Made by a program: the position numbers and the translations under genes | Notes under the pieces: generated by a model | Database searches by the model: none | The model's input: the letters and a program-made list of their open reading frames with translations, nothing else | What the model was told of the DNA's origin: nothing | Assembly: GCA_002269645.1 (NCBI GenBank) | Contig: NIVC01000063.1 | Location: 1 to 64,000 of the forward strand | Source of the DNA: Macrostomum lignano | Taxonomy: Eukaryota | Direction: 5' to 3' | DNA: 64,000 bases | In this document: positions 283-31,074 of the stretch, piece by piece | How the letters are laid out: every line of letters begins with the position of its first letter | How positions within the stretch are numbered: position 1 is the stretch's first letter

Positions 283-733
283 TCAACGGCCGTTCCAATC
301 ATGGAGGCGTTGTAGTTCTTTACCAGATCGGCCCGGTTGAAACACCACGGCGTAGACCTTGGGCAGGAACAGGATGCTCACCGCGAACAGGTTGGTGAAC
401 AGCAGAACGAAGACCAGCAGAGCGCCTGCTGACGTCAGCGAGGCCATCGTGACGAGGCTGGGAATGAAGGCGATCCACACGAAGGTGGCGCACGCCGTGA
501 AGGCCAGGATGCACTTGCTGTCGTGGAAATTGTCCGCAGGCTGCGAACTCGCACGGCCAGCGAGCACGTGACCAGCATGAGCAGCAGGTTGAGCGCGTAG
601 GGAATCCACAGGCTGCTGGAGAAGTAGTCGCACTGGAACTCCACGACGGTCTGGCGTCGGATCGGAGGCCGTTGAGCAGCAGCTTGATGGGGCGGATCGG
701 ACGCGTACTGAGAACGCTGCACAGGAGCACCAC
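283..733 (-). pseudogene. Class C GPCR copy A, exon 2 (TM4-TM7 and short C-tail), with two 1-bp deletions
   Basis: Near-identical to exon 2 of copies B and C. Acceptor CTCAG|GTGGTG at 734/733; TGA at 283-285. Single-base losses versus B and C at ~648 and ~536 split the frame across ORFs 320..733, 435..722 and 283..633. Confidence 0.85.
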
Positions 734-1456
734 CTGAGGTTTAGAGAAGAAAGCTACATCAATGTTTTAGAGCAGCTCGATTCATTCCGATCTCAGCACA
801 CACACTCAGCAACATGTTAGAGAATTCCCGCTCCAAAACCAGCGATTAAACTTCTCTCAGATCTCAGCCCCAAGTGACGCAATTCACGCCACTCCGCGGC
901 TCTCGACTCAACTGTGGATGAGGCAATTTGCGCCACAATTGGCCCCAGCTTCCGCTGTTGAGGAGAGAATGGAGAGTTATGGCTAAGAGGTTGGATTAAT
1001 GCCCGTCTCATCTTTGCATTAGCGTGAACTAGGTGTAGTATAATGGCATCTGTGCTGGGCAAACTGCAAATGCAATGCACTTGTTTAGTCTTTTGTGTTT
1101 GCCTCCATTTCTCTTAGGCTCTTTTGTGAGCCTGGAGTGGAATGGGTGTTAGCCATCCACCCCTCGCGCGGTACATTGTGCCGCCTTTGTGCTCCGTCCT
1201 CTCTACCCCCCGTGGGGTGGGGGGGGGGGTTGCTCACCCGCTTATTTATTTGCACGCCGCCCTCTGTGCCCGTCGCTCGCTTTGGCTTTGCAGCTTAAGA
1301 TGTATTTCAGAATTAGTTCAACTAGATTTTGAAGTTCTCGTGAAAACTACATTGTGCTGAAACATTGGCCGCTCTCCTACTATAAATTCAACCGAGACCA
1401 CAGAATACTGTCACCCAGACCGTCTCAGTGACCCGGGAAATGTAGGTAGTTCTGCA

Positions 1457-1730
1457 CAGGGGCGTACAGGGGGGACAGGCAGGACATGTCCCCCTAGTAA
1501 AAGCAGTCTTTTGACCTGTTGTGAAAATAAATATTGCAATAATAGTGTTTCAGGGTGCTAAAATATACGAGTAGCACATGCGGCACCAAAATAAGTGCCT
1601 GCGGCGCTAAAATGAGTTCCTGTGTCGCCAAAATGAGCGCTGACAACACCGATTTTATTTAGTCATGTGCATCTACATGTAAAATTTTTGTTTTTTTTGC
1701 CCCCAATATGAAATCAATTGCAACCCCCTG
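1457..1730. mobile_element. hAT-like MITE in the intron of GPCR copy A
   Basis: CAGGGG...CCCCTG termini; flanks GTTCTGCA / GTTCTTTA match at 6 of 8 positions (degenerate TSD); internal GCGGCAC/GCGGCGC subrepeats. Confidence 0.55.
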
Positions 1731-2164
1731 GTTCTTTAATAACCGTTAGTTGGAAATAAAGCTGCAATGATAAAAAAGTAACTATTGTCTATCCCTCAGC
1801 GATCTCGTGGGCTAGACTTTCAATTTCGTATCACTAGTAGAGATGCTATACTGCAGAGCTGCATATATCGAGTCATTACATATAAAGCCAAGATCTAAGC
1901 CTAAACTATCGTATAACAATCGAGATGTAAAAAGTCCAAATGTTTTCTGACTGATCATTACTCCGCGCAGCCGATTGAATTCCTAATTGCAACTGGATCC
2001 CACTGACAAAAAATTGAACGGCACAACGGGTAGACAGATTATTGCAGAAAGAAAGGAGAGTTTTTCATGTACTCTAATATACCATCAATATTGATACTGT
2101 CGAAGTCTGTGGACAAAAAACTAGATAAGCATTTGGATCGATGCTTTAGCAGAAAAAAACTCAC

Positions 2165-4213
2165 CTGCAACAGGCAAACTACGATTGTCATCACAACCAC
2201 AGCTTTACGCCCGGTAAAGCTGAGTCCAGATGCGCCGCGCATGGAGCCCACGAACACGCGGTAGATCCGAGCGCTCTTGGTCAGCAGAGCCGCGTACACC
2301 ATCGTGAGGCTGAAGTGGTACAGAAACGCCTGCACGTTGCACACGGTGAGCGACGGCTCGCCGAAGAACAGCGCCACGTCGACGAGTCCGAGCTGGATGC
2401 CGACCTGTTGGAACACGCTCAGCTCTAGCGAGGACGCCTTCAGCAGCGGCACGTTCGACCTGGCCAAGAAGAACACTCCGGTCGCCATGGTGACCGCAGA
2501 GCGAGCGCCGACACGCCGATGAACACGATGCCGCTAGTGTCGCTCGGTCGGAGGACGGTCAGCGCGAGCGGCTCGCAGCGAGAGTAGTTCGAGCTCGGCC
2601 AGGTAAGCGAGGCGCACTTCTCGCACAACGTACCGTTCGACCCTACGATCTCGTCGGAGCTGCACGGTCTGCACACCCAGCAGCACTTGCTCACCTGCAC
2701 TCGGTACTCGCGATTGCCGCACGGTAGAGAGCACACACTCGTTGGTACGAGCGTTGGTAAGTCGCGTCTCCAAGCCACGAGATCAGGCTTCGATTCATGC
2801 TGAGACCGTGCTCAGAGCTCCACACACCGACAGTCACTCTCGAGCTCACCTGTTTGCTGCTCTGGTAGAGCACAACATAGGAAGCGGGACCGTTTCCGTT
2901 GCTGTCGAGCTTCACCTCTCCCGTGTAGCCGGTGAAGTTCGTTCGGTACAGCTGCCTCAGCAGCAGCGGTCCGGTCACGCACTGCAGCAGCGCCGACTTG
3001 TTCAGCCTCGGCTCCAGGCTGGTCGCGCACTCCGACCTGGCCACCGCGTCGATCGCGTGGCGAACAAGAGAAACGCGTCCAGCATCCGAGCGACTGGAGC
3101 GACAATGCTGGACGGGGTGAAGCTGCTCGACTCGGACACTCGACGAGACGAGTTCGTAGTGCAACAAGCACACGTTGAGCAGTTCATCAGCTGATCAAAC
3201 ATGATTGCACCGTTGTACATCTTAGAGAGGTCAGAGTAGGTAAGGTTCAGGTACCACTGCATCAAGTCGGGTGTTGGGAACAGGCTGAAGTAGACAGTAA
3301 AAGATGCGTTCGCATAGGCATTGGTGTTATAACCCGTATCGCTAAAGATCAGAATAATGCCAGCCTTGCCAAGAACACTAAAAATATTCTCCGAGGTTCT
3401 GCTGACCGAGTTGAGCCACACCACAGCTTTCATATTCTGCTGAGACTCCACTGTTTCCAGGATCTCGCTGTCCTGTGTTGCGCCAGTGATTGGTATGATG
3501 AAGGCCAAGCAGGCCTCTGGAAATCTAATTGGCAGGCTTGACGAAAACTGTAGGGCTATGTTGGTGAAGTATAAGTTGCTGGCGTCATACACTACGCCGA
3601 TGTAGGTCCAGTCGAACTCGCGAGCCAGGTCTATCATGACGACGGCCTGGTAGGAGTCCGGACTCACCAGCCTGACCACATTGGGAAATCGTGTGCGGTC
3701 GCTAAGCGAGTCGCTGCTGCACTCCGTGCCGACCATGGGCACTTTGAATGGCTGCAAAGCGAACGAAAGAACCTGCGTCTCCGCGCTTGACCAGCCTCCT
3801 ACAACTCCGTGCAAAGGCCTCTTCGAGCTGCTGGCAGGCCATGAGGTGCCGTTGCAGCCGCTAGGAATGCCGGTATCAGGCGAGTGACTTTTCCAGGCCG
3901 GGGATACTCGATTGGCGGCCTCAATGGCCACCGTCTCCTTGTAGCAGGTCTCCAGAAAGGCCAAGCCCAGACTAATGTTGTTTGCACCGAACAGCAGATC
4001 CGGCCGAGTTTGAATTTTCTCCCGAATGAACCAGGGTAGAATCTGTCTCAGTAAGGCTGCTTCAGTGAGGCTGCTCGGACACTGGCCGGTGCCGTGCAGA
4101 AGGCCGATTGTGATGTCACCGGGCATGCAGTATCCATCGACAGCCTGGCAAACTGGTGTACGCTGTAGTCCCAGCAGTAGAAGTGACAGGATAATCACAC
4201 CTTTTGATCGCAT
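2165..4213 (-). pseudogene. Class C GPCR copy A, exon 1 (signal peptide, Venus flytrap, Cys-rich domain, TM1-TM4), frameshifted or mis-sequenced
   Basis: ORF 3002..4213 has a signal peptide and VFT motifs (GGWSS, LSDRTRFPNVVRLVSPDSYQA, WTYIG). Continuation in shifted frames gives CSLPC...CCWVC...CEKC...C and TM1-4. 1-bp deletions versus B and C at ~3060, ~2748 and ~2502. Donor CAG|GTGA at 2165/2164. Confidence 0.9.
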
Positions 4214-5889
4214 GCTTTTACCTGTTTTTTTGAGCGGTTAGTTTTTACACTTAGTTATGACGAAGATAAATGCGCCATGAGAAAGCCCCGGCTCAAAGTC
4301 AAGGCGTCACGTTTTATATCTAGAGCGTTTTATCCACTTTGTCACGCGAATCACCTTTTTATTAAGCGCAATAATCACTGCCATAATCCGCTCCTTTTTC
4401 TCGATGGGAACTCATTCTTCGCAAAGAAAGACTGGTAGCGCCACTTTCTATTGTGATTGTTTCGTCCCCGTCCAAAAGGGTGGAGTCTTGAGCCAAAATC
4501 GGGGTGCAGGGTCTGCATCTGCTCAATTTTTTGTGTAGATTGCGGTATACACGAGAGGATAGATTACAATGGATACTCGTATGGCTATTTATATTCGAAG
4601 ATATCATACGTGATTACATTGAATTTAAAAAAGGCTTGTTACTCATGCAAAAACTGTCAGGCAAAAAGCAAGGCTGTCTGCCACAGAGAGACTTACCGAT
4701 TGTTGTTAGCAAAAAAAACGCAGCGGACTGCATGACTCGAACCCAGGCGAATCCCTCACTGGTTGGGAAATCCTGTGGGATTTAGTGTTATACCTGACTA
4801 ATCTCTTGTTCGGGAGATGGAGGCAGCAAATGGGCCTTGCCCCACTCACTTGCCGGGTGAACTCATTGGCTGGCGAAGGAATGTGTAATGACGTCTCAAA
4901 GTCTGTTTCGAGACTAACAGTTTATCATTTTACCTTCTCAGATTTTAATCCGCTCTTGGCCAGAAAAAACCCATGTTCAGATTATTGAAATCTTTTCGAA
5001 TACCTTTAAGCCAGATTTAATATATATATATTACAGTCTTCTAGCTTTGCTTTCTTTAAAAAATCTGAATTTAATTGAAAAACATTTGAGCAGCTGATGG
5101 GTGCATCACTTGGACTTGGATAATTGCCATCCAAGTCTACATTGTACGAGCGTCTATTGTCTAGTGTATCTCACTTCTCGTAGAATGTATCGATTTCTTT
5201 GAGTTTTTGCTTGTTACAGTTATTTCCAAGCCGGAAAAGTAACTAAATCGTAGTAAGCATTTGCTCTTTACTCTTGAGGGTTGGGAGAGCAGATTAAGCA
5301 AACAGAAAAACCTGCCTAAACTGAACTCTCAAATGCCATGCGGAGTCGTGAAAGCTGAGCTCTGAAACATCCGATGAAATCGTTAGCATACGGCCTGCAT
5401 GTATGCAAGTCTTCACCTCGGGTATTGAGATGCGAATTTGATACAACTTGGTGTCGTTAATCTCTCAAAAGTCGATGTCTATCGAATGCATCGATTCCAT
5501 TCGCAGAGAGATTGCTTTCAAACACAAGGATATCATTGAGTAAATGAGCGCTCTTTACGATCGAACGCTAAGACTAATCAAACTAATGATGCTTGAGTCT
5601 CGAATTCGCAAGATAAGGATTCGAGCTCAAGAGCTCTCTTTAACTTTCGTAAGCTAGCTGGCGGTAGCCTTAGCAAGGTTGGGCTTAGCGCGTATTGATT
5701 TGTATACTTGTCAACATTACGCAATCGGCCATCAAAGTAGAAGGACTCTGCAGATTTCCTTGGAGGAGTCGGTTTTCGGCTGACAAAATATGCATTAACA
5801 AGATTTCTTATTTCAACTTTGGCAGTCAATAGGCAGTTTATGGACTTCCGAATTGCATATGGAGGTGTGGCCAAAAAATAACCAGAATT

Positions 5890-6250
5890 TTACTTCTGAT
5901 GTCAGTTTTAAATGCACTCCTGGAAGCCCTCCGTCGATATGTCTCCTAATACGCGTACCAGTCTTACCAGTCTTAGGAAATGATGTTTCAGCCTAACATT
6001 GCGGCATTGAACGTGCTTCGTGCGCTGGTGCATTGTCGTGATGCAGCAACCAGGGCATTGTGCTCCTACTGTTAACGTCAAACCCGCCGCATGCTCAACA
6101 TCAACCTCTCGAGGACTTCGCGATAAAAGTGCCGATTCATTGTGACACAAACTCTTGATGTGATCTCGTTTCGCTTTTCCATGATGTGATATACATGTAG
6201 GGCTTCATTGACAAACTGTTTCTAGATCTGTCTAGAAGCATTATACTAAA
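5890..6250 (-). mobile_element. Degenerate mariner-family transposase remnant
   Basis: Minus-strand fragments read HQEFV, TMNRHFYREVLER, WLLHHDNAPAH (6015-6052) and GDISTEGFQEC, the order expected in mariner DD34D transposases. Broken by stops, frameshifts and deletions. Confidence 0.75.
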
Positions 6251-6960
6251 GTGATACCAAATTTTGTTTGCAAACGTTGTTTGCTTCCTGCTCCCCGGTA
6301 GAATTTCATAAAAATTAGTTCGGCAAACATGCGATGCAATCATTGATACGCTCGTACCTCACCCAGCTCGTGTGAATTTAAGATTGGTACAGGCTTGTAA
6401 ACTGACTAGGGGATTTGCCGTACAATCCACAGCCATATCATGAGGGCCAGCCTCCAGAGTGCACATGCCTGACGATCATGGCATGTGTACACCCCGTGTG
6501 AGCGTGCGTGCCTGCGTGTTGGAGTATTGGCGCGCTTGCGTGTGCTCAGGAGTCAGAGGAATGGGGCAGAATTGTTTGCAGCTCTGGCTGTGGGTCGTTG
6601 CGCGAGGGTGTCCGCAGCCCTCCTGGGAATATTATTTGCTATTAAACGTACTATTTCGCTCCAATTGCAGTCCAGAAGTCCAGGATGCGACAAATCGACA
6701 AATAAAGCGATGGGTTTTCAGTGAAGATCGCACAGTGCAAGAGTGTAGCTAATGCAGCCTTCTGCTTTACTTGTCAATGGTTGATGTAGTAGCTGGCATT
6801 CCTCTCTTTTTGAATCTGTTGGTAGTAATAGGTATAGCATTTTTACATTTATTTTTGCATGATTTTACTGATTGGATGAGAACTCACACGAGATATCAGA
6901 AGAGCTTTGAACTCACATTACTCTCGTAGCTACAGTTAGTGTACTTTTAGTGTTGCTTAA

Positions 6961-7187
6961 GGGGTTGTAAGCCTAGTGGTTAGAGTGTCGGACTCACGAC
7001 TGAGAGCTTCAGTTCACCCATCTGTAAACTGAGTGCCAGCATTAGCTGGGGTAGTCGAGGGTGTGTGTGGCGACCCCCCAGTCCTTGGACTGAACAGCCG
7101 TACGCAGCCTTCAGATGCGCCGCGCAATAGCTGCGGCTGAGCTGTCGGTTGCACATCTGCCCACTAGGGCAGGTATAATAATAAAAG
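6961..7187 (+). mobile_element. tRNA-derived SINE copy (B-box region deleted)
   Basis: A-box-like CCTAGTGGTTAGAG head; body shared with the copy at 36613-36874; ends in ATAATAATAAAA. Confidence 0.75.
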
Positions 7188-7708
7188 TTTACTTCAAAAA
7201 ATCTCAGAGATCCGACGGTGAGATCTCATCCTACTCTCTTATATAACCGATATGGATATCCGGCGCCACGGATTGGGCCGGCCGCGTGGCGTTCATTCGC
7301 GAACTGGCCTTGAGGTGTGCCCTGTGACGCTGAACGCGTATTCTATTGTTGTAGTTGTTATAATCGATATCGATTTTCAAACCAAGCTCGGTGCCTTTCT
7401 TTCTATGTACTTTTACTGTACATTTGTGTTTTGCACAATGATCTTTATTTGTTTAAATTCTTGTTCATTACTGTATTTCTTCGGTAGCATACCATAGTAA
7501 TACAATAATGTACACTAAGAAACCTTGACGAGATCTCAACGAAAATTAGCATAAGTACATTATCGAGTTAATGGCACTCTCGGAATGATTAAATCTATAA
7601 TCTCCTTTCAGATCTCAACAGAGATCTCATAACCTCCACCCTCTCAGCCTAAATCAAAGATTAGGAATTGACTCTGGCTACTAAACAATAATTTGTCTTG
7701 ATATCCTT

Positions 7709-7928
7709 GAAATCCCCATGACTGAAATCCCCGTGACTGAACTCCCCGTGACTGGAATCCCGTGACTGAAATCCCCGTGACTGAACTCCCCGTGACTGAA
7801 CTCCCCGTGACTGAAATCCCCGTGACTGAACTCCCCGTGACTGAAATCCCCGTGACTGAAATCCCATCATTGAAATCCTGGTGATTGAAATCCCAAAGAC
7901 TCAAATCCCTGTGACTGAAAAGCCCCGG
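7709..7928. repeat. 15-bp minisatellite (TGACTGAA[A/C]TCCCCG)n, ~14 units
   Basis: Tandem units seen directly; the array decays at its 3' end. Confidence 0.9.
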
Positions 7929-8323
7929 CTAAGGAACGCTGTGTATGGCCATTGCTCAACCAATCAGGTAAATGTCGAGACCGCACTAGCAAACACGCAC
8001 TAGCATGCATACAATTAAAATGGACCTGCTGATGTCGCATCAGATTGAAGCTAATTGCTGGATGAGGACGCTTACTAGGCCACACGATAACTGCGTAAGT
8101 GAACTGTCAATCTGGAGTAATTACTTCGCTCCTAAATCGTTGCTAAAATTATAGTCCAATTTTTCAGACACGTACTACAGTGATTCTCGTAGGAACTCTA
8201 CCGTGACTTTTACTTAGAAAGTGGATTTGTATGAAACTTAACATGAAAAGGTTTTACCAAGGTTATAGATTGCGTAACCTTGGCTTCTGCTACATAGGTC
8301 TGTTTCTAAAAGCAATTCAGAGA

Positions 8324-9226
8324 TAGCTTGCGTCCCCCCTTTAGCTGGCGCCCCCTCTGTAGCTGGCGCCCCCTTTGTAGCTGGCGCCCCCTCTGTAGCT
8401 TGCGCCCCCTCTGTAGCTGGCGCCCCCTCTGTAGCTGGCGCCCCCTTTGTAGCTTGCGCCCCCTCTGTAGCTGGCGCCCCCTCTGTAGCTGGCACCCCCT
8501 CTGTAGCTGGCGCCCCCTCTGTAGCTGGCGCCCCCTTTGTAGCTGGCACCCCCTCTGTAGCTGGCGCCCCCTCTGTAGCTGGCACCCCCTCTGTAGCTGG
8601 CACCCCCTCTGTAGCTGGCACCCCCTCTGTAGCTGGCGCCCCCTCTGTAGCTGGCGCCCCCTTTGTAGCTGGCACCCCCTCTGTAGCTGGCGCCCCCTCT
8701 GTAGCTGGCACCCCCTCTGTAGCTGGCACCCCCTCTGTAGCTGGCACCCCCTCTGTAGCTGGCGCCCCCTGTAGCTGGCGTCCCCCCTTTAGCTTGCGCC
8801 CCCTCTGTAGCTGGCGCCCCCTCTGTAGCTGGCGCCCCTCTGTAGCTGGCGTCCCCTCTGTAGCTGGCGCCCCCTCTGTAGCTGGCGCCCCCTTTGTAGC
8901 TGGCACCCCCTCTGTAGGTGGCACCCCCTCTGTAGCTGGCGTCCCCCCTTTAGCTTGCGTCCCCTCTGTAGCTGGCGTCCCCTCTGTAGCTGGCACCCCC
9001 TCTGTAACTGGCACCCTTTCTGTAGCTGGCACCCCCTCTGTAGCTGGCACCCCCTCTGTAGCTGGCACCCCCTCTGTAGCTGGCACCCCCTTTGTAGCTG
9101 GCGCCCCCTCTGTAGCTGGCACCCCCTTTGTAGCTGGCGCCCCCTCTGTAGCTGGCACCCCCTCTGTAGCTGGCACCCCCTTTGTAGCTGGCGCCCCCTC
9201 TGTAGCTGGCACCCCCACTGTAGCTG
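8324..9226. repeat. 18-bp minisatellite (TGTAGCTGGC[G/A]CCCCCTC)n, ~50 units
   Basis: Tandem units seen directly; lies between the divergently oriented GPCR copies A and B. Confidence 0.95.
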
Positions 9227-9995: not shown

Positions 9996-12050
9996 ATGCT
10001 TTCCTCTGTCCTATGGGTGCTGCTAATTTGGTTCTCAGTAGCGACGGCAGACGACACGCCGAAAGCAGACGGCTACTGCCAAGCAGGAGACTTCATGCTG
10101 GTCGGACTGCACGGATCGAGCTATTGCACTGGCCACCCAACGGAGTCCGAGTACCTGCGTCAGGTTGCGCCCCATTTCTTACGAAGAAAGTTGGCAGAGA
10201 AGCCGGGCACAATATTCAGCCAGAGTGAAAACCTCACTTTAGGAGTCGTTTTTCTCGACACCTGCTACTCCGAGGCTAAAGGTGCCGCTGTTGCGAGTCG
10301 AGTTCGAGCTGCTTGGAGACGTCCAGCTCTGTTGGAAACTGGAGACCGGTGCAGTATGCTCAATGGCATCGATCCCGACCCGGTGTATTTAGTGCACGGC
10401 GTGATCGGCGGCTGGTCCAGCGCTGTCACACAGACGATGCTGTTCCCGTTGCAGAATGAAGCTCTGCCCACAGTCGGAACCGAGTGCAGCAGCGACTCGC
10501 TCAGCGATCGAGTTCGGTTTCCCAACTTTGTACGACTGGTGAGTCCGGACTCATATCAAGCGATGGTGATCATTGACCTGCTCCGCGAGTTCAACTGGAC
10601 GTACATCGGTCTGCTCTACGATCCAGGAAGTGTCTACAATACAAACATCGCTCTTCAGTTGTCATCCAGTCTTCCAGGCCGATTTCCTAGCGCCTGTTTT
10701 GCGTTCATTATTCCGATGACTAGCAACACAGAACCAATGGAATTAAAAGAGGCTATAAAACAGAAGCCAAACTTGCGAGCTCTGATTTGGCTGAAGGACG
10801 TTAATGACAACTTGAAAAGCGTCGACTTACTACAAGCAGTTGAAAGGACTGGAGTGTTTGTCATAATGGCGGATGAGAACTACAATCAAAATATCTATAC
10901 AAACAACTCATTCACCGTCTACTTCAATATGTTCCCAACACCCGACTTGATGCAGTGGTACCTGAACCTTACCTACTCTGACCTCTCTAAGATGTACAAC
11001 GGTGCAATCATGTTTGATCAGCTGATGAACTGCTCAACGTGTGCCTGTTGCACTACGAACTCGTCTCGTCGAGTGTCCGAGTCGAGCAGCTTCACCCCGT
11101 CCAGCATTGTCGCTCCAGTCGCTCGGATGCTGGACGCGTTTCTCTTATTCGCCCACGCGATCGACGCGGTGGCCAGGTCGGAGTGCGCGACCAGCCTGGA
11201 GCCGAGGCTGAACAAGTCGGCGCTGCTGCAGTGCGTGACCGGACCGCTGCTGCTGAGGCAGCTGTACCGAACGAACTTCACCGGCTACACGGGAGAGGTG
11301 AAACTCGACAGCAATGGAAACGGTCCCGCTTCCTATGTTGTGCTCTACCAGAGCAGCAAACAGGTGAGCTCGAGAGTGACTGTCGGTGTGTGGAGCTCTG
11401 AGCACGGTCTCAGCATGAATCGAAGCCTGATCTCGTGGCCTGGAGACGCGAGCGACCAACGCTCGGTACCAACGAGTGTGTGCTCTCTACCGTGCGGCAA
11501 TCGCGAGTACCGAGTGCAGGTGAGCAAGTGCTGCTGGGTGTGCAGACCGTGCAGCTCCGACGAGATCGTAGGGTCGAACGGTACGTTGTGCGAGAAGTGC
11601 GCCTCGCTTACCTGGCCGAGCTCGAACTACTCTCGCTGCGAGCCGCTCGCGCTGACCGTCCTCCGACCGAGTGACACTAGCGGCGTCGTGTTCATCGGCG
11701 TGTCGGCGCTCGGCTCTGCGGTCACCATGGCGACCGGAGTGTTCTTCTTGGCCAGGTCGAACGTGCCGCTGCTGAAGGCGTCCTCGCTAGAGCTGAGCGT
11801 GTTCCAACAGGTCGGCATCCAGCTCGGACTCGTCGACGTGGCGCTGTTCTTCGGCGAGCCGTCGCTCACCGTGTGCAACGTGCAGGCGTTTCTGTACCAC
11901 TTCAGCCTCACGATGGTGTACGCGGCTCTGCTGACCAAGAGCGCTCGGATCTACCGCGTGTTCGTGGGCTCCATGCGCGGCACATCTGGACTGAAATTCA
12001 CAGGGCGAAGGGCCGTAATAGTCTTGACAATTGCAGTTTGTATGTTGCAG
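9996..12050 (+). CDS. Class C GPCR copy B, exon 1 (mGluR/CaSR-like; 837 aa when spliced)
   Basis: ATG at 9996 with signal peptide, VFT, 9-Cys domain (PTSVCSLPC...CCWVCRPC...CEKC...C) and TM1-4. Phase-0 donor CAG|GTGAGA at 12050/12051. Confidence 0.95.
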
Positions 12051-13118
12051 GTGAGACATTTATGAAACGCAATTCTATTTTGAAAAATATTTTTTTTTAA
12101 ATTGAATAGTCTTTTTCAAGTTACGTCAACAGTGGTATGATACAGACACAGAAGCCGTCTGAAGGCAAACTTCCGTTCTCTGCTTGGTTGCAAGGGAGCG
12201 TTAATATCTTTGTAATCGGCAAATCTTGGATGAAGTCGCTGACAAGATTACTATTGACTGAGTATACAAATGAAAAAGGAGCTGCTGCTGCTGCTGCTGT
12301 TTTTTATCGATCGAATTGAGCAATCACATTAGGCAGTTCGTGGCAGTTTTTTCAAAGCTGACAAAGTCCGAGTCTTCAAGCAATTGCCGACTACAAGCAG
12401 CTCAAACGTGTCATATCGCCTTCCAATGCATAACGATAAAGTACGTTTTCGGTTGAAAGTTTTGCTAGAAAGCTCAATACTCAATTAGAACTGCCTAAAT
12501 TCAGTCTTTGCTCGTACTTCCTAATAAGTATCCTAACTTCTTCCTCCTTTTTCGTTTGTTTTGCTGCTCAATACGGTTGTAAATTTAAGAAGTTCCATAT
12601 TGAGTAGGGAAAGGCTTCGTCAGCCAAAGAGTCTGCTAGGTGAACCCGGGAGCAAACTTGGCAGCTTACTTATCGAGGTGCGGGGTCCATGGTTCACTTT
12701 TTGGAGGTTGGAAACGTGATACGAGCTAAGTAGTGCTTTGGGATTAAGGGATTAATAAAGCAGAGGATAATGACTCCGTGCTACTTTACTAGGCAAGAGT
12801 TTAGGCCTTGTCCTAGCTCCAAATTGAGTGGCAAAGGATGCTGTTTCAGCCTCCTAATTTAACCGGATAAACCAGAACCTGATCGTCAAAAACCTGGACG
12901 ATGAAAAATTTTACAACCTTTTTAAGCCGGAACTTGTTCTTTAAGAATCTATTTCCAGGAGTACAACGTCGTTTGCTTAAGCCTTATTTTTAAAATTGCA
13001 AAAAAGTATTTTCCAAGTGCTTCTGTCTCATAATCCAACACAGCACTGTGCGATCATACTGAACGCACTGCATAACACATCACTCTGTAGCATCTACCTG
13101 AACCTTCACGACACTCAG

Positions 13119-13577
13119 GTGGTGCTTCTGTGCAGCGTTCTCAGTACGCGTCCAATCCGCCCCGTCAAGCAGCTGCTCAACGGCCTCCGATCCGACGCCA
13201 GACCCGTCGTGGAGTTCCAGTGCGACTACTTCTCCAGCAGCCTGTGGATTCCCTACGCGCTCAACCTGCTGCTCATGCTGGTCACGTGCTCGCTGGCCGT
13301 GCGAGTTCGCAGCCTGCCGGACAATTTCCACGACAGCAAGTGCATCCTGGCCTTCACGGCGTGCGCCACCTTCGTGTGGATCGCCTTCATTCCCAGCCTC
13401 GTCACGATGGCCTCGCTGACGTCAGCAGGCGCTCTGCTGATCTTCGTTCTGCTGTTCACCAACCTGTTCGCGGTGAGCATCCTGTTCCTGCCCAAGGTCT
13501 ACGCCGTTGTGTTCGATAAGTCCGACAACGCCAAGCACTACAACAACAGTGTATTGGACGCCACAGGGACACAGTAG
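13119..13577 (+). CDS. Class C GPCR copy B, exon 2 (TM4-TM7, C-tail)
   Basis: Acceptor CTCAG|GTG at 13118/13119. Class C 7TM motifs (QC in ECL2, PYxxxL, RSLPDNFHDSKCI, FLPKVY). TAG at 13575-13577. Confidence 0.93.
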   Translation: MVLLCSVLSTRPIRPVKQLLNGLRSDARPVVEFQCDYFSSSLWIPYALNLLLMLVTCSLAVRVRSLPDNFHDSKCILAFTACATFVWIAFIPSLVTMASLTSAGALLIFVLLFTNLFAVSILFLPKVYAVVFDKSDNAKHYNNSVLDATGTQ

Positions 13578-14786: not shown

Positions 14787-16808
14787 TGTTGTAAATGCTG
14801 CGTCGCTCTCTTTCCCCTTGGCTCTGGTTGGCCGATGGGCCAGGCTGGGGTTTAGGGGCGCACGTCTCACCCCGGCCTGACCTACGTTCTGTTCAGTTTT
14901 CTTCTCTGCCCTGTGCCGCGGCGGCTTGTGATTGGCTGTCTGGTGGGGTGGGATTGTGGGAGTGGCTGTCCGCTTGCTGCCCGTCCCCCTGGCCCCTCCC
15001 CCTCTGCTATTTAAAGAGCGCGCCTTGACCCAACCCGTGTTCCAAGGGTCTACGACGTTTGCCTGCGGGACGTTTGCCAGCCGACGTTTGCCAGCCGACG
15101 TTTGCCAGCCGACGTTTGCCTGCCGAAAGTTTACCAGCTAAAATTTGCTAGCCAATTCACGTATAAAGCCAGTCAGTGAAAAATTTGATACTGAAATATT
15201 CGCAGTTTAGCGGTTTGACAAAAACCGTTTTTACTCCAACTTTTTGACGGTTATTTGCATATATACAAGTTCGAAAGCAAAATCTATATAAATTATGCAA
15301 TTTATTAGTCTAACATCTAATATCTAGTTTAATAACGATTTTCTTTGAATGTGAAAATATAGTTTACTTAATTTTTGACAATTGTGTATCCTTTTTTCTA
15401 GTTTGAGATGTTTGATTTTTGATGTGCGAAAGAAGACGCGCAGATTAAAACGGGAATCTCCAGCGATTTAAGATATGAAGCAAACAAAAAGAGCTGCTGA
15501 GCGGTAATTCTGGCTCATATATTTCTCAGTTCATTGGGAGATCTAAAAGTAAGCAAATTGATTCCAATTCTGTTGTATTACTACGCAAGTAAGCCAGGAA
15601 ACCGCGATCTCAACGTTCATGTGTCAGACGAGTCGAATGCGGTACGTTTTTATAGTAAGCTAGCTGAATAGCCAGACAAGCCGCCAGTTGCAAGCTAGTA
15701 GGATAGCAAGCGCTAGACACTTCGTATACAAAGCTTAGTCACGCCAAGGACTACTAAAGTAGAAGGACGCGCAGCACTCGAAATCTATGGAAAATGTTTT
15801 GAAGGCCATAGGGAGATAGGAAGTTTTCATCTTTTCAGCACAACAATTGTTATTGCTTTCATACGAGGCAAACTCATGAATGTTCATCTTTTGATATGTT
15901 TTGCCAAAATCGTTGTTAAACTAGGTATTGCGTTAGACTAATGAACTGCATAGTTTATATAGATTTTGCTTTCGAACTTGTATATATGCAAATAACCGTC
16001 AAAAAGTTTGAGCAAAAACGGTTTTTGTCAAACCGCTAAACTGCGAATATTTCAGTATCAAATTTTTCACTGACTGGCTTTATATTGGCTAGCAAATTAC
16101 AGCTGGCAAACTTCCAGCAGGCAAACATCGGCTGGCAAATGTCGGCTGGCAAACGTCCCGCAGGCAAACGTCGGCTGGCAAACGTCGGCTGGCAAATGTC
16201 GGCTGGCAAACTTCGGCTGGCAAACGTCCCGCAGGCAAACGTCGGCTGGCAAACGTCGGCTGGCAAACGTCCCGCAGGCAAACGTCGGCTGGCAAACGTC
16301 CCGCCGGCAAACGTCGGCTGGCAAACTTCGGCTGGCAAACGTCCCGCAGGCAAACGTCGGCTGGCAAACGTCGGCTGGCAAACGTCGGCTGGCAAACGTC
16401 CCGCAGGCAAACGTCGGCTGGCAAACGTCCCGCAGGCAAACGTCGGCTGGCAAACGTCCCGCAGGCAAACGTCGCTATCCCTGTTCCAAACCACCTGCTC
16501 TCGTGTGGCCGTGCGAAAACAGTGCAACTCAGTTTAATACTTCACACATCGTGGCCAGTAGACCGCGGTCTGTTGCGCACTTCTGTTGTGACCAAAGTTT
16601 TGTGTGCAAATAGTACGAGTTCTCTTTCTCTTTGGGGCACCTGTGAACTCTCGCAGTAGTGGTACCAGCCCGTTGCGGCGGTGCTAGGCTCGGGAAGCGC
16701 TGCGAACTTGAATAGCATCGAGCGTTTCCTCTTCGGCGGCGCTTAGGCCCCTATACCCCACGCAGCTGCTTGCGTGTCTCTCTGGGCCGTTACCTGGGGG
16801 ATACAACA
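14787..16808 (+). mobile_element. Probable solo LTR (~580 bp) interrupted by a foldback element
   Basis: TGTTGTA...TACAACA termini, reverse CCAAT at 14930, TATTTAAA at 15008. Flanking 5-mers GTAGG/ATAGT match only 3 of 5. Confidence 0.55.
15046..16481. mobile_element. Non-autonomous foldback/MULE-like DNA transposon
   Basis: GGG...CCC ends; perfect 8-bp TSD TGTTCCAA (15038-15045 and 16482-16489); ~290-bp inverted arms carrying tandem CCAGCCGACGTTTG subrepeats, expanded on the right arm. Confidence 0.85.
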
Positions 16809-16944
16809 ATAGTTCTATGGCAGAGATACTATTAGATGCTTGAATCTATTGGATACTCGCATCTACTGTAGATAGCTAAATCTTTAGACGTCAGTCAATT
16901 GGATTGCATGGGTTGTGCATCGCTTCCGACATTACTGGCCCTAT

Positions 16945-17743
16945 CAGGGACAACTAAAACCCTCGGGACGCGAAACGAGCCAATTCATGGCAAAAAATCT
17001 GAGGGGCTCGCTTAAAAGTATTGTTCTATGGCTTTTTCAAGTCTTCTCTGCTATCAAGCAAATTAAAATTGCTTTAGTTGCGGCCAGCAGTGAAGCTAAG
17101 CTGAACTAAATCAAGAGAAGCATTTTTTATTCACTTGATGAAATGCCAAGAAAGTGCAGCGTATTTCCGTGCTCGTCAAATTACAACTCTGAAGCCGTTC
17201 GAAGCAGGTACAGGAGAAGTTGGCACAGAAACCGACGCAGCCGATGTGATCCAGTCAGTTTTTGCTAGTCTATCAGGAGCTCAGCGAAACTGCGTAATTA
17301 TGTTTGACGAAATGTACATACAACCGTCCGTTCGATATCGATGCCGTCACCTTCTGGGTCGAGCCGTCGACGATCCGGACCAGGTTCCTTTATGTACGAG
17401 CTACTGACTGTTTGTGTCGTCTTGTCCTTGGAGTTCCGTATTTGCTTCTATCTCCTTGCCGTTGGAGTTTCATCTTCGCTTTCATCCTTTATCTTCTTGC
17501 CGTTGGAGTTTTTTTGTTGATATGGCGGTTACTTTATTGTAGATACATTGTAATTATATCACTGGTTCCTATTCTTTAAATTAAATACTCGACATTGCCT
17601 CGCTTTACTATTTAATCTAACCGTTAATGCCTGATAGCAGAGAAGACTTAAAAAAGCCATAGAACAATACTTTTAAGCGAGCCCCTAAGATTTTTTGCCA
17701 TGAATTGGCTCGTTTCGCGTCCCGAGGGTTTTAGTTGTCCCTG
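16945..17743 (+). mobile_element. Internally deleted P-element/THAP9-like transposon
   Basis: ~115-bp near-perfect TIRs (CAGGGACAACTAAAACCC...); direct repeat TGGCCCTAT on both flanks; THAP start MPRKCSVFPCSSNY at 17143; catalytic-region motif CVIMFDEMYIQPSVRY in ORF 17135..17407. Confidence 0.85.
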
Positions 17744-18227
17744 TGGCCCTATACTTTTATGAGACTTTCACGAAAAGACGCGTAATTTCCTCTATTTCCC
17801 TTACATATATTGTAATTAATTAAATAAGCTGTTTACACCATGGGTTACTGCGAGGAGCTTTATTTATTTGTAAGAAAAATTTACAGTGTACTTGCGATAA
17901 CTGTATGAGAAACTGCAGGGACCTTTGCTTGACACAGATATACCTATATAACGACATGTGGGTTAATGATAATGTAATTGACAGATCCAGATAAAGGCTT
18001 TTCTGGTGTTAAGAAATTATTTTATTGCCCAAACACTTCAGTGAAAATACTGATGTTTGCAACAATAAGTACAAGCGGCTGTAAGCGATAGCTTACTGAT
18101 AGTAAAGCTATTTGAGCATGGCGCGAATTCCTCACATGGTGGACTAGAAAATGTCGCCATGTGCAAGGGCGCATAAATAGCAGTTCCACTCAGCTGGCTA
18201 GAGGTGGAGCCGACCTCGTGTGGCTAT

Positions 18228-18270
18228 GACTGACTGACGAGGGCAAAAAAGCCCGAAACCGGTCTCAGTC
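18228..18270 (+). ncRNA. Minimal type I hammerhead ribozyme
   Basis: Stem I GACTGA/TCAGTC, core CTGACGA, stem II GGGC-AAAAAA-GCCC, GAAA, palindromic ACCGGT stem III, GTC cleavage triplet (cut after 18264). All conserved core nucleotides are present. Confidence 0.85.
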
Positions 18271-19939
18271 TGCCCCGCATGGTTCGATTCCCACTTTTAG
18301 CCGCTGATAGCGGCATTTCAGTAAACGGTTCTGAATATTCAGATTCAGTTGCATTGTTCTACTCTTAGTAGTCAGGTCAATTCACTACTGGAGACTACCA
18401 GACGTGAAAGAAAATCATAGTTGAATAAATCAGTGACATTGAATCAGTGCCCCAACATGGATTTAAGTTCAAAGTTTGATTTTCTCTTTTTTCGTGTCTA
18501 ACAACGAAATTACATTTATTAGTCTGTCGTGGATCTGAACTGAAAAGCAAGCAGATCGAGAATTGGCATCGAGTGTAGCTTCAATAGCATTTTTAATCCT
18601 GACAGCCCAAGAAATCCGATGTCTCTAAGAAGGTTTTCGCATAGCAAATAGCAATTAGTGAATCGCTCTTTGATGCAATTCTGTTTCTAAGTCAAACTTA
18701 TGCATGTTATGGAGGTCGCTGCGTTTACCTGGCTTCAAGTTAAAGAAAGCCAAACAAGTTTCAGAAGTGTCAAACAATCAATTTATCGCTCAGCAAATTC
18801 CTATTCAGATTTTCAAAGCTTTTCTCTTGCTGCTTTTCCAATAAAATCGTAGATAAAATCGTAAAATCTACGATTTTATTCTTTGTGCTTGGCCAAATGG
18901 AAGGTGCACTAGTGCACAGCGTTTGGTTCGTCAGTAGCTTTTGGGGGCTTAGTCAATGGAATGGAGCCCGAATTACTAGACTCCATCTTCAAGATTTGAA
19001 GCTTCGAGTTGAGTTTTGTCGAGCAGTTAGTTAAGTAATACCGAAAAATGCGAAATTTCACTTCAAAGTAATCAATTTCGCTTTACAATAGCACTTTTTA
19101 TCATTAAAATATAATTTAGACTCTAGTAATACCTACCTACCTACCTACAAACCATTTTTAGTATATGGATCATTCCTGAAATCATCAATTTAACACATTC
19201 ATTTACCGTTCCGCTTCGTTTTTGCTTTTAGAAATTCGAGAGTCTTCTTAACATTTTTCTAAGAAAATGAAGGAACTTATCAGAACGAGTTAAAATATGT
19301 TACGTTAATGCATTGCCTTGCAAAATATAGAATGCATAGCTACAGACAACCATACATTTGCACAATAAATTGTATAGTAAATTTAAATAAATACGCAAGT
19401 TACGGAATGACATCGTAATCACCGGCTTTGAATAAAAACTGACGTGAATTGCGCTGCTCTAAAAAGCTTCGACATGACTAAAAACTGACTCCACCCTCTC
19501 TAAACAGCATAGTGCTTAATGGAGAAAACAGCAGCAAATATATGCTTCTGCTGTCTGAATCATAAATGTAACAAGTCGACTCAGGTCGGGACAAGGCTCC
19601 ACTATCTCAGATTAACTCGACTCGAAACTCGTCAAGTATACGATTAGCAATGCCGCGACCCCCTTTTCCAGGTCACTTCCTGGAGCTCCTATTGCTTCTA
19701 GTTCACTTCTCTGGCTCCATTTAGTAGCTTAAATTGACATCCATTTGCTAGTTTAAAGGTCTCTTCAGTAGCTTATCAAGCATAACGCATGCTTGCTGAT
19801 CCTTTGCTATTGGTCTAATGTTGTGGATACCATGCAACCTCTAATATTTAATAGTTATTGAGGGCTTTTTGCAAATGAAATATGCAGAAAGGGGAAATAG
19901 GGGAACCCCATCCTCGTCCCCGTAGACGCATTCTGGTGC

Positions 19940-20660
19940 CAGACAAGACGGCCAGCAGAACGACACTTCAAATTCTACGATCGATCTTTTCAAGACAAGG
20001 CGTGCCCAGAACCCATGGTGTCAGACAACGCATCGGAGTTCTGCGACGGCGAGCTTCAGCAGCGGCTACGGGGCATTGAGTGTAACCTGGGGCACTGTTC
20101 ATCGTACCATCCTCAGTTCAACGGCTGCTCAGAGTGCATGGTCAGACTACTTCTCAAAGTGCATGGTGCACCGCGGCTCCTTAGAGGCCAACCTGGCCAA
20201 GTTGCTGCTCAACTACCGGTCGATGGCACGGTGGGACGGCCGAGGCAGTCCATCAGCGCTAAAAATGGGCCGACAGCTGAGGAGCCCTCTGACCATGACA
20301 TTCGAGACCGACGCACCGATAATTTACGCTCGTATCAGCCTGTCTCCGGTGCATCTACCGAGATAGCCATGTTTCGGCGTTCAGGCAGGCAGTAACACGG
20401 CTGCAGTGGTCATTCGAGACAACAACCGGTCGGTGCTCGCCCATCGAGACCAAAGCTTCCAGCGGACACGGCGTCCACGCCCCTCCAGCAGCAAGGGACC
20501 GGAGGCGAAATGGAGCAGGCGGCTGGAGAGACTGCTGATGAGTCCGAGTCCGAGAGCTCGACCGCAAGAACTCAGGAGACCAACGCACCTTCCGAGACGT
20601 TGCGAGCGCTGCAACAAAAGAGTCCATCCCCAGCGGCTTACGCCTCAGTGGTGAGGCGGA
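19940..20660 (+). mobile_element. Ty3/Gypsy integrase remnant ending in a polypurine tract
   Basis: Fragments TTLQILRSIFSRQGVP, MVSDNASEF, YHPQFNGCSECMV and LLNYRS...SPSALKMGRQLRSPL; purine-rich GGTGAGGCGGA directly before TGT at 20661. Confidence 0.8.
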
Positions 20661-20888
20661 TGTGGCGCCGCTGGGTTGCGTCACTTTTGATGAGCTAACG
20701 ATCTACGCATTTCTATTACTGACTGGCTCTATGAGTTTAATGTACAAGTACTGTACTCAGCATGGAGGCCTGCCACGAATGCCGCCTATTGCACTTAAAT
20801 AAGATTTTGTTTTGTTACAATATAAATGCATGTTTATGAGACTTGACGGTTAACAAGTCGTGAATATTAACCGAACTACGGCACGACA
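20661..20888 (+). mobile_element. Possible 3' LTR of the Gypsy remnant
   Basis: Starts TGTGGCG right after the PPT-like tract and ends CACGACA. The right boundary is uncertain. Confidence 0.4.
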
Positions 20889-21494
20889 CTATCAATTGCA
20901 GCATCTACAGATTCTCAAACAGGCTCTTTATGCCTACTGTCAATCGCTATAGGCCCCTAAACTGTGAGCTTAAAATATATTTTTTTAAGTTATGCACAGT
21001 GCAAACTAAGCTTAATTTGGTTTAGCCAACTAAAACGTTCGGGTAAAGCCTCAGGTAAATCTAGACGTAGCTACGAGCGAATGTTTCACCAACGTACCGA
21101 CCTACAACTTTGTCGGTCATTCGTAAAATATTTACCTCTGTCTCGGTGCCTCGGCGGAGAATATCACAGTCAAGTGGCTTTCTGAAGATCACTAGCATCT
21201 CCAAAAAATGCACTTTTATCAAAAACATTTTTATCGATAGCTAATTCGTAGCTGGATGTGAAAAAATGTTTTTAGCGCCGATTGGTTAAGCAATCAAGCT
21301 TCTCTATGCCACTCATGGCCAATTGAATTCACAAAACCAAATTGGCTGGAGCCCCTTTTACTCAGGATGAAAACTTCGTTTTGATTCTGCTTAGAAGCTG
21401 TCAGCATTTGTCATTCTGAAGAAAAAAATTGAAAACAGAAGCTCACATAATATTTGACGAGCTGAGAGTCAATTTCGATCGGATAGTTATAACT

Positions 21495-23567
21495 ATGCAA
21501 GTACAACAGATAATTGCAATTGTTCTAATGACTCAGACTCCAGCATCATCGTTTATTAAAGTCGCAGCTGCACAGCCAAGGACAAATAGCTACTGTGTGG
21601 CTGGAGACTTCACACTAGCAATGCTGCACAGTACCAGCTACTGTAGAAATAGTCTCAAAGAGGAGGAATTCCTGCGACAGTTGGTGCCTCGCTTCGTGCT
21701 CGAGAAAGTGGCAGCGAAGCCGGGCACAATATTCAGCCAGAGTGAAAACTTCACTTTAGGAGTCGTTTTTCTCGACACCTGCTACTCCGAGGCTAAAGGT
21801 GCCGCTGCTGCGAGTCGAGTTCGAGCTGCTTGGAGACGTCCGGCTCTGTTGGAAACTGGAGACCGGTGCAGTATGCTCAATGGCATCGATCCCGACCCGG
21901 TGTATTTGGTGCACGGTGTCGTTGGCGGCTGGTCCAGCACCGTCACTCAGACTTTGTTATTCCCATTGCAGAACGAAGCTCTGCCCACAGTCGGAACCGA
22001 GTGCAGCAGCGACTCGCTCAGCGATCGAGTTCGGTTTCCCAACTTTGTACGACTGGTGAGTCCGGACTCATATCAAGCGATGGTGATCATCGACCTGCTC
22101 CGCGAGTTCAACTGGACGTACATCGGTCTGCTCTACGATCCAGGAAGTGTCTACAACACAAACATAGTAACGCAGCTAACCTCAATTCTGCCAACTCGAT
22201 TCCCCCTTGCCTGTCTAGCCTTTCTAATGCCACTGACAAGTGCAAATGTAGCAGCAGCTATAATAGAACAATATCAAACCCAACCAAATTTACGAGCACT
22301 GATTTGGCTAAAAAGTATCGACAATAATTTGGAGACTATTCAACTTCTTCAAGCATTGGGAAAAGCTGGCGTGTATCTCATTATGGTTGATGGGAACTAC
22401 AATAAAAATATCTATACAAACAACTCATTAACCGTCTACTTCAATATGTTCCCAACACCCGACTTGATGCAGTGGTACCTGAACCTTACCTACTCTGACC
22501 TCTCTAAGATGTACAACGGTGCAATCATGTTTGATCAGCTGATGAACTGCTCAACGTGTGCCTGTTGCACTACGAACTCGTCTCGTCGAGTGTCCGAGTC
22601 GAGCAGCTTCACCCCGTCCAGCATTGTCGCTCCAGTCGCTCGGATGCTGGACGCGTTTCTCTTGTTCGCCCACGCGATCGACGCGGTGGCCAGGTCGGAG
22701 TGCGCGACCAGCCTGGAGCCGAGGCTGAACAAGTCGGCGCTGCTGCAGTGCGTGACCGGACCGCTGCTGCTGAGGCAGCTGTACCGAACGAACTTCACCG
22801 GCTACACGGGAGAGGTGAAACTCGACAGCAATGGAAACGGTCCCGCTTCCTATGTTGTGCTCTACCAGAGCAGCAAACAGGTGAGCTCGAGAGTGACTGT
22901 CGGTGTGTGGAGCTCTGAGCACGGTCTCAGCATGAATCGAAGCCTGATCTCGTGGCCTGGAGACGCGACTGACCAACGCTCGGTACCAACAAGTGTGTGC
23001 TCTCTACCGTGCGGCAATCGCGAGTACCGAGTGCAGGTGAGCAAGTGCTGCTGGGTGTGCAGACCGTGCAGCTCCGACGAGATCGTAGGGTCGAACGGTA
23101 CGTTGTGCGAGAAGTGCGCCTCGCTTACCTGGCCGAGCTCGAACTACTCTCGCTGCGAGCCGCTCGCGCTGACCGTCCTCCGACCGAGTGACACTAGCGG
23201 CGTCGTGTTCATCGGCGTGTCGGCGCTCGGCTCTGCGGTCACCATGGCGACCGGAGTGTTCTTCTTGGCCAGGTCGAACGTGCCGCTGCTGAAGGCGTCC
23301 TCGCTAGAGCTGAGCGTGTTCCAACAGGTCGGCATCCAGCTCGGACTCGTCGACGTGGCGCTGTTCTTCGGCGAGCCGTCGCTCACCGTGTGCAACGTGC
23401 AGGCGTTTCTGTACCACTTCAGCCTCACGATGGTGTACGCGGCTCTGCTGACCAAGAGCGCTCGGATCTACCGCGTGTTCGTGGGCTCCATGCGCGGCAC
23501 ATCTGGACTGAAATTCACAGGGCGGAGGGCCGTAATAGTCATGACAATTGCAGTTTGTATGTTGCAG
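21495..23567 (+). CDS. Class C GPCR copy C, exon 1 (842 aa when spliced)
   Basis: First ATG in ORF 21429..23675 is at 21495; same domain order as copy B; phase-0 donor CAG|GTAACT at 23567/23568. Confidence 0.93.
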
Positions 23568-23720
23568 GTAACTCGTTCTTGGTTTTTTTGCTTCAGAAGA
23601 ACTCCCGCATTTTTTCGTATTTTACTTTTCCTATGTTACTCTAAAGCTGAAGTTTACCTAGAAAATATATTGTAAATAAGGGTTATTTAATATTCAATAT
23701 TGGACGATCCATCTCTTCAG

Positions 23721-24176
23721 GTGTTGCTACTGTGCAGCGTTCTCAGCGCGCGTCCGATCCGCCCCGTCAAGCTGCTGCTCAACGGCCTCCGATCCGACGC
23801 CAGACCCGTCGTGGAGTTCCAGTGCGACTACTTCTCCAGCAGCCTGTGGATTCCCTACGCGCTCAACCTGATGCTCATGCTGGTCACGTGCTCGCTGGCC
23901 GTGCGAGTTCGCAGCCTACCGGACAATTTCCACGACAGCAAGTGCATCCTGGCCTTCACCGCGTGCGCCACCTTCGTGTGGATCGCCTTCATTCCCAGCC
24001 TCGTCACGATGGCCTCGCTGACGTCAGCAGCCGCTTTGCTGATCTTTGTTCTGCTTTTCACCAACCTGTTCGCGGTGAGCATCCTGTTCCTGCCCAAGGT
24101 CTACGCCGTTGTGTTCAATAAGTCCGACGATGCCAAGCACTACAACAATGGCGTCATATGTGCCACTGTGGCTTAA
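23721..24176 (+). CDS. Class C GPCR copy C, exon 2
   Basis: Acceptor TCTTCAG|GTG at 23720/23721 after a 153-bp intron; TM4-TM7; TAA at 24174-24176. Confidence 0.93.
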   Translation: MLLLCSVLSARPIRPVKLLLNGLRSDARPVVEFQCDYFSSSLWIPYALNLMLMLVTCSLAVRVRSLPDNFHDSKCILAFTACATFVWIAFIPSLVTMASLTSAAALLIFVLLFTNLFAVSILFLPKVYAVVFNKSDDAKHYNNGVICATVA

Positions 24177-24585
24177 CAAACGTATTATGGCTTTAAGAAA
24201 GGCAACAGTGAATCTTGATTTATTTTACTCTATTGATAATAAATTTTGTGTAAAGGATCAAATACTAAGGTAATTTTTAAAAAAAATCTTCACTTGTATT
24301 GTATGTCGAAAGTTTATTTTACATGACATTGTAAGTGTAAATCTGCTTGGGTTTATTGCTGATTTGTTCTACTAAGCAATGTCTCGCTTAGTCTGATTCA
24401 TCATAGTCTTGTCACGTACTTGTGTCACGTGCTTGTCACGTAGTCTTGTCTTGTCGGACTTACACTTCATGTGTAAACGAATGTAGCTGAATTAATCAAG
24501 ATTGCAGTTTTTTGTCGTCATAATTGTTTAGTGTAATTTTTGCGTCTTCTCTTGAGTCTCGCACTGTCGTTAATCTCCATTTTAA

Positions 24586-29953: not shown

Positions 29954-29992
<39 letters not shown>

Positions 29993-30197: not shown

Positions 30198-30232
<35 letters not shown>

Positions 30233-30455: not shown

Positions 30456-30496
<41 letters not shown>

Positions 30497-30827: not shown

Positions 30828-30858
<31 letters not shown>

Positions 30859-31033: not shown

Positions 31034-31074
<41 letters not shown>

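Follow-up and report, generated by a model that had tools for sequence, protein, structure and literature searches.

Mosaic near-identity among three linked class C receptor genes of Macrostomum lignano and its probable origin by gene conversion

How can paralogous genes be almost identical over one part of an exon and saturated with synonymous differences over the next? This question is raised by three class C G-protein-coupled receptor (GPCR) genes of one family, here termed A, B and C, that lie in the first 24 kb of a 64-kb window of Macrostomum lignano (positions 1 to 64,000 of contig NIVC01000063.1, assembly GCA_002269645.1), the window being the whole stretch that was analysed, which contains no N and is gap-free. 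The three genes share the same layout, two exons encoding a Venus-flytrap domain, a cysteine-rich domain and a seven-transmembrane (7TM) domain; A and B are arranged head to head with 5.8 kb between them, and B and C stand in tandem, 7.9 kb apart. An initial annotation, made by eye, had described these genes as block mosaics and had attributed the pattern to repeated gene conversion. The analysis presented here points in the same direction: the mosaic quite probably arose by repeated interlocus gene conversion among paralogues that are old and closely linked, although several of the accompanying proposals required correction.

Block structure of the three copies

Each gene is interrupted by a single GT..AG intron of phase 0, located at an identical codon of the fourth transmembrane segment (TM4), and the intron measures 1431 bp in A, 1068 bp in B and 153 bp in C. 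As the initial annotation had held, introns and flanks are unrelated, with no blastn match among the introns or the 2-kb flanks (word size 7, E<=0.01). Introns and flanks without similarity, combined with the same phase-0 intron position, indicate that the duplication is old and the identity of the coding tracts secondary. Scanning the 64 kb for further copies or fragments of the family revealed none beyond the three.

Block borders were called from a three-way MAFFT alignment, a codon alignment and a two-state hidden Markov model run on the latter, and the borders previously drawn by eye were reproduced within about 15 bp. For B and C, which both lie on the plus strand with intact first exons (9996-12050, 685 codons, and 21495-23567, respectively), the N-terminal part is private, with 54% of sites differing over B 9996-10191. 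It is followed by a tract shared by B and C only (B 10192-10399, C 21709-21916; 5 differences in 208 sites), over which A is about 52% different, by a short patch covering the GGWSS loop (B 10400-10448, C 21917-21965; 12 differences in 49 sites), and by a second tract shared by B and C only (B 10449-10648, C 21966-22165; 3 differences in 200 sites). The next segment, in lobe 2 of the flytrap (B 10649-10876, C 22166-22393), is private again; here 98 of 228 sites (43%) differ, and the proportions of differing synonymous (pS) and non-synonymous (pN) sites, calculated together with synonymous divergence (dS) by the Nei-Gojobori method, are 0.80 and 0.29. From B 10877 and C 22394 the two copies are nearly identical up to their introns, and this tract together with B 13119-13546 of exon 2 contains only 24 differences in 1602 sites. 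Within the patches private to B and C, A is 41-47% different from both.

Copy A, on the minus strand, is private over its first ~310 codons (3283-4213), where it is 46% different from B and C and synonymous sites are saturated. Downstream it joins a core common to all three copies (A 2223-3282, B 10930-11992, C 22447-23509), with 9-11 differences in 1060 sites, ~99% identity and a dS of 0.02. The end of exon 1 in A contains a private patch (2173-2222) that is 34-36% different from B and C, whereas B and C are near-identical to each other here. Sharing resumes in the last bases of the exon and continues into exon 2 (2172-2165 plus 733-339; 6-14 differences in about 400 sites), and the exon 2 tract of A (339-733) is 98.4% identical to B and 96.4% identical to C. 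The first ~30 bp of exon 2 of C carry 4 differences. The shared tracts thus thin out near the unrelated introns, the last ~50 bp of exon 1 of A being apparently unconverted, as predicted for DNA-templated repair that needs homology on both sides. The start of the three-way tract, at residue ~312, falls inside the flytrap domain (~490 residues) and not at a domain border, so that about 180 flytrap residues belong to the three-way shared part.

Two features of the initial annotation were only partly borne out by these blocks. The C-terminal tails had been called unrelated, which is true for the last ~10-25 codons only, as nearly all of exon 2 (TM4-7) is 96-98% identical among A, B and C. The GGWSS loop had been called locally diverged, and this holds at the nucleotide level but not in the protein: B and C differ over B 10386-10460 by 11 synonymous and 3 non-synonymous changes, with a pN/pS of 0.08. 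To judge from these substitutions, the GGWSS patch is apparently an old, unconverted segment conserved in protein and not a diversified one.

Evidence for exchange and alternative explanations

Synonymous sites, equal divergence of which the initial annotation had named as one of two refuting outcomes, are not equally diverged along the genes: pS is 0.012-0.08 in the shared tracts, whereas in the same genes the private tracts have values of 0.6-0.8, i.e. saturation, and between B and C 9 of 354 four-fold degenerate sites differ in shared tracts vs 23 of 41 in private tracts. The longest identical runs measure 532 bp for B and C and 295 bp for both A/B and A/C, and in 2000 permutations of sites the longest run was at most 116 bp (B/C) and 67 bp (pairs with A), giving p<5e-4. 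A condensed test of the Sawyer (GENECONV) type yielded p=1e-4 for B/C and weak support for the pairs with A, for which it has little power because the core holds few polymorphic sites.

The identity of the shared region could also reflect constraint on the nucleotide sequence itself, and the unconverted comparator for this question was the only close relative found, a 1671-bp sequence from Logan SRR31628425 (L001). Amino-acid identity is 69% for the 3' part of exon 1 and 77% for exon 2; its exon 1 ends at 1070 and its exon 2 begins at 1145, with a 74-bp intron at the same phase-0 position. L001 is separated from B by a dS of 1.0 (3' part of exon 1) and 0.69 (exon 2), and therefore no constraint operates on the shared region at the nucleotide level.

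The shared tracts also differ in their history. Copy-specific substitutions number eight in A, three in B and one in C within the core, and three, two and ten, respectively, within exon 2 (Fisher p=0.005), so that the closest pair is B and C in the core, and A and B in exon 2; the separate block trees that had been suggested as a check thus disagree. Tract dS ranges from 0.012 in the B/C core, through 0.02-0.03 in the core of A and in exon 2 of A and B, to 0.07-0.08 in B/C 10461-10648 and in exon 2 of C. This pattern calls for at least three or four separate exchanges. The claim that simple duplication is insufficient is upheld by the shared synonymous divergence of 0.01-0.08 next to saturated private tracts, the unalignable introns and flanks, and the discordant block trees.

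A recent duplication might nevertheless be reconciled with the mosaic if the shared tracts were the original sequence and the 5' parts had undergone local hypermutation or strong positive selection, and the high amino-acid divergence of the private tracts (non-synonymous divergence, dN, 0.37-0.8) would fit such a history; dN/dS in these tracts is undefined because dS is saturated. This scenario is extremely improbable. With private synonymous sites saturated and introns and flanks unalignable and of very different length, hypermutation would have had to strike almost all sequence outside the shared exonic tracts; the GGWSS patch has diverged in its synonymous sites yet is conserved in protein, and the block trees are discordant. 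Two further candidates were rejected, namely unequal crossing-over, which would bring introns and flanks along, and conversion templated by complementary DNA, which would delete the intron.

Near-identical repeats in an assembly may also arise from repeat collapse or cross-polishing, and the 96-100% identity of the shared tracts would be in keeping with such an artefact, as would six 1-bp indels of A in short C/G runs, which resemble consensus errors; in addition, look-ups found no independent assembly of the species. Nonetheless, we consider an artefact very unlikely. The shared tracts contain 28 copy-specific substitutions besides the indels of A, which shows that the copies were not collapsed, and collapse or cross-polishing would erase such substitutions, with their block-specific patterns, and the indels. 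Polishing may turn 97% into 100% identity but cannot make identity beside sequence that is 45% different. Each tract is anchored by unique introns and flanks, and the gap-free window crosses kilobase-long (3-kb) microsatellites, implying reads far longer than tracts of 0.2-1.2 kb.

The interrupted sharing between B and C permits a different order of events, in which these copies were homogenised over about 10192-12050 and the patches at 10400-10448 and 10649-10876, perhaps also the N-terminus, were later imported from paralogues outside the window. The 49-bp GGWSS patch, lying between two identical tracts of ~200 bp and differing mostly at synonymous sites, looks as if it had been pasted from a functional paralogue, and the existence of L001 demonstrates that a close relative of the family occurs elsewhere. 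No donor is present in the 64 kb, however, A being too different from B and C in these segments, as described above, and two or three independent flanking tracts account for the pattern equally well. Import thus seems rather improbable; if true, it would mean that conversion in this family diversifies and does not only homogenise.

For gene conversion, the preferred explanation, the following course of events may be envisaged. An old duplication would have given rise to linked two-exon class C GPCR genes A, B and C, and breaks in one copy, repaired by homologous recombination off another copy, would have overwritten coding parts several times. As a tract can end only where the copies are still alike, conversion would halt at the unrelated introns and the diverged 5' part; its confinement to exons may be explained in this way, because homology ends at the introns and the diverged 5' blocks. 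The region formed by B 10930-11992 and exon 2, which runs from the second half of the flytrap through the cysteine-rich to the 7TM domain, would have experienced long-term homogenisation in all three copies, and GC-biased repair of heteroduplex mismatches would have raised its GC content at third codon positions (GC3). The 5' tracts of 200-210 bp and the terminal ~60 bp of exon 1 would represent separate exchanges in which only B and C took part. The block structure, the contrast at synonymous sites, the discordant block trees and the contrast in GC3 are observed; we infer how recombination took place, the direction in which it ran and any benefit to function, for instance a G-protein or dimer interface kept in common while ligand-binding parts differ.

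Base composition, selection and the state of copy A

The contrast in GC content between shared and private tracts, previously noted by eye, is real at third codon positions. In the tracts common to all three copies GC3 is 0.82-0.83, against 0.45-0.60 for private sequence, and Fisher tests of three-way shared vs private tracts give p from 1e-9 to 1e-20; over 20-codon windows GC3 correlates with mean identity (Spearman rho 0.76), while GC at first and second codon positions barely changes between tract classes. The proposal of GC-biased conversion consequently fares differently in the two kinds of shared tract, being supported by the three-way tracts but not by those shared by B and C only, in which GC3 is 0.57-0.59 (values in B and C). 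The overall pattern fits GC-biased conversion that has long acted upon the common 3' region and, for the B/C-only tracts, recent single events.

Several observations weigh against gene conversion, or against parts of the history outlined above. The B/C-only tracts lack a GC3 excess, and in B they do not differ from private tracts (p=0.59). L001, which is not homogenised, has a GC3 of 0.73-0.77 in the same half of the gene, and part of the GC3 signal may be a regional property of the whole family rather than a product of conversion. Protein, metagenome and exact open reading frame (ORF) searches retrieved neither an orthologous cluster of a sister species nor a further family member from this genome. 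The identity of the tracts is known from the assembly sequence.

The initial annotation had further proposed that selection keeps the cleft-lining, ligand-binding segments distinct, as in a diversifying family of chemoreceptors. This part of the proposal is unproven, because dS is saturated in the private tracts; loss of homology alone would stop conversion and may hold the private segments apart without selection. A stronger form of the idea would regard the genes as a cluster with a constant and a variable region, in which selection permits or favours conversion of the 3' 1.5 kb and removes convertants of the N-terminal flytrap, and in which A serves as a reservoir. Although unlikely, such an organisation would, if true, imply a common dimerisation, G-protein and trafficking interface along with flytrap segments that set ligand specificity, and would make this a chemoreceptor-like invertebrate class C family in which recombination does what shared constant exons do for clustered protocadherins.

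Models exist in which conversion is opposed by selection and in which pseudogenes are preserved by conversion. The present cluster resembles both kinds, being a conversion-prone family with diverged segments and including a possibly dead copy, A, that is ~99% identical to the others over part of its length; with respect to the former models it differs in that loss of homology alone could stop conversion.

The possibility that A is dead arises from frameshifts on which the initial annotation was silent. Exon 1 of A (2165-4213, minus strand) encodes a signal peptide, the Venus-flytrap, the cysteine-rich domain and TM1 to the start of TM4; tblastn matches change frame along it, and it ends at the donor site CAG/GTGAGT. 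The frame opened by the ATG at 4213 (ORF 3002-4213) is intact to 3061, where A has a 1-bp deletion relative to B and C (GCCCAC to GCCAC), and is disturbed further by four 1-bp deletions beside positions 2749, 2503, 650 and 537 and by a 1-bp insertion at 342. All six indels fall within or at the edge of shared tracts, and the private 930 bp of A are intact in frame. After correction of the indels A reads without a nonsense codon through exon 2 (261-733, encoding TM4-7 and a short tail) to a stop codon at 263-261.

Whether these indels are real is a matter of about even odds. A consensus error in A is favoured by the high ratio of indels to substitutions, with six indels vs 11 A-specific substitutions, and by the sequence context, as each of the five deletions removes a base from a run of C or G next to a CpG. 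A young pseudogene is favoured by the complete lack of indels in B and C over 3.6 kb. The A-specific substitutions, six non-synonymous and five synonymous, are in a ratio that is uninformative on pseudogene status. Exact look-ups in other assemblies of four ORFs of the window, including the frameshifted 403-residue ORF of A, found none on record.

Mosaic conversion accompanied by raised GC3 is an already known pattern, and the understanding of gene conversion is unchanged by this cluster. Mosaic concerted evolution has been described for the pairs BMP8A/B, DDX19A/B and TUBG1/2, in a study that also cites TLR1/TLR6 and the adhesion GPCRs EMR2/CD97/EMR3 (PMC2720389). These pairs resemble A, B and C in combining homogenised and divergent segments in one gene, in the raised GC3 of the homogenised part, and in close linkage in direct or inverted orientation, and it has been suggested that a common structural, signalling or partner-binding part is kept while ligand-binding parts diverge (PMC2720389). 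In contrast to the mammalian pairs, whose intervening introns are homogenised as a requirement of the study and whose mosaic persists across species (PMC2720389), the introns of A, B and C are wholly unrelated, their shared tracts are confined to exons, and the mosaic is known from one genome.

In a literature search, which was not exhaustive, no description of such a pattern came up for class C GPCRs. The locus provides a clean, high-contrast example of an exon-confined mosaic, with about 1% vs saturated synonymous divergence within single exons and with unalignable introns between homogenised exons, in a cluster without close annotated relatives. Whole-gene trees or dN/dS values for the family would mislead, and block-by-block analysis is needed; care is likewise required in short-read mapping or polishing over the shared tracts, and a gene or pseudogene label for A calls for a prior check of its frameshifts.

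Relatives, ligand site and surrounding sequence

For the complete copies, the coding sequence of B continues from exon 1 across the intron (12051-13118, GT..AG, phase 0, 1068 bp) into exon 2 (13119-13577), which encodes TM4-7 and the tail and contains the stop codon, and that of C across its intron (23568-23720, 153 bp) into exon 2 (23721-24176); the ATG of C at 21495 is the first Met codon of an ORF opening at 21429. The product of B comprises 837 residues, and the Pfam domains recognised in B are ANF_receptor (the Venus-flytrap, PF01094; residues 78-450, E 6.8e-30), NCD3G and 7tm_3 (PF00003; residues 558-811, E 8.3e-41, with the whole profile covered). The NCD3G match (PF07562) scores 36.3 bits, slightly below the gathering score of 38.9 bits, and the corresponding region aligns to the cysteine-rich domain of the metabotropic glutamate (mGlu) receptor mGlu4, including its pattern of Cys residues.

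An exhaustive HMMER search identified 2036 relatives (E<=1e-10); among full-length matches the best are 28-34% identical and come from the gastropods Bulinus and Nucella, the nemertean Lineus and Priapulus. A word-indexed protein search returned only matches of 21-29% identity and is of limited sensitivity, having overlooked even a 78%-identical fragment (it missed L001), and a metagenome scan with a peptide of the shared tract gave no match. The other relative locus, L002, contains one gene only and is hence of no use for testing conversion elsewhere. Among relatives of solved structure, mGlu4 and mGlu6 are the best matches (E about 3e-66). The order of Venus-flytrap, cysteine-rich and 7TM domains is the same as in mGlu receptors and other class C GPCRs, from which A, B and C differ in their 25-34% identity to any named protein, their two-exon structure and the replacement of a Lys that contacts the ligand side chain by Pro.

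This Lys lies in 'KVQFVIDA' of mGlu4 (K405, equivalent to K409 of mGluR1) and stands in the HMMER alignment opposite the Pro of 'APVARML'; the position is Pro in A, B and C alike, and lies at residue ~373 of B (window ~11110-11120) within the three-way shared part. In mGluR1, Arg78 and Lys409 are important side-chain-binding residues for glutamate (PMC6307864); the alignment gives no reliable placement for the equivalent of Arg78 in A, B and C. The GGWSS and TECSS motifs align with 'GASGSS' and 'YAST' of mGlu4, so that the Ser/Thr residues of the motifs that bind the amino-acid backbone remain present. With Pro in place of the glutamate-binding Lys, glutamate would be an unlikely ligand of this family.

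Class C chemoreceptor expansions are known in vertebrates as the V2R/OlfC families. The present genes resemble them in forming clustered paralogues, and A, B and C are known here from sequence alone.

Mini- and microsatellites abound in the window. One 18-bp minisatellite, with ~50 copies at 91% match (8324-9226), lies 770 bp upstream of the start codon of B and yields long artefactual ORFs on both strands, and a smaller 15-bp array is found at 7708-7920. The interval between B and C contains a 290-bp inverted repeat pair of 90% identity (15053-15342 and 15906-16187), one arm of which adjoins a 14/29-bp minisatellite (16102-16474), as well as a weak remnant of a P-element/THAP9-like TNP RNase H domain (17105-17404, plus strand; E 8e-4). 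Just downstream of C is a direct repeat of ~220 bp and 89% identity (24582-24805 and 25546-25762). Very long simple repeats follow at 29602-32794, 33212-34589, 38735-39179, 41868-42252 and 43110-43801; they include a 3.2-kb (AGAC)n-based array, a 1.4-kb array of a 15-mer, a perfect array of 30 copies of 15 bp, (GACA)n and (GATA)n, and cause strong strand composition skews between 28 and 44 kb.

A remnant of a Tc1/mariner-type DDE_3 transposase is located at 47916-48209 on the minus strand (E 7e-6) and, like the TNP RNase H remnant, falls below the Pfam gathering threshold. An Rfam scan of the window gave no match. Two further ORFs on the minus strand, both without a Pfam match, encode single-pass membrane-like sequences, one of 411 residues with a poly-Pro stretch (56121-57356) and one of 250 residues that is Thr-rich and mucin-like (63018-63770), and are probably exons of unrelated genes.

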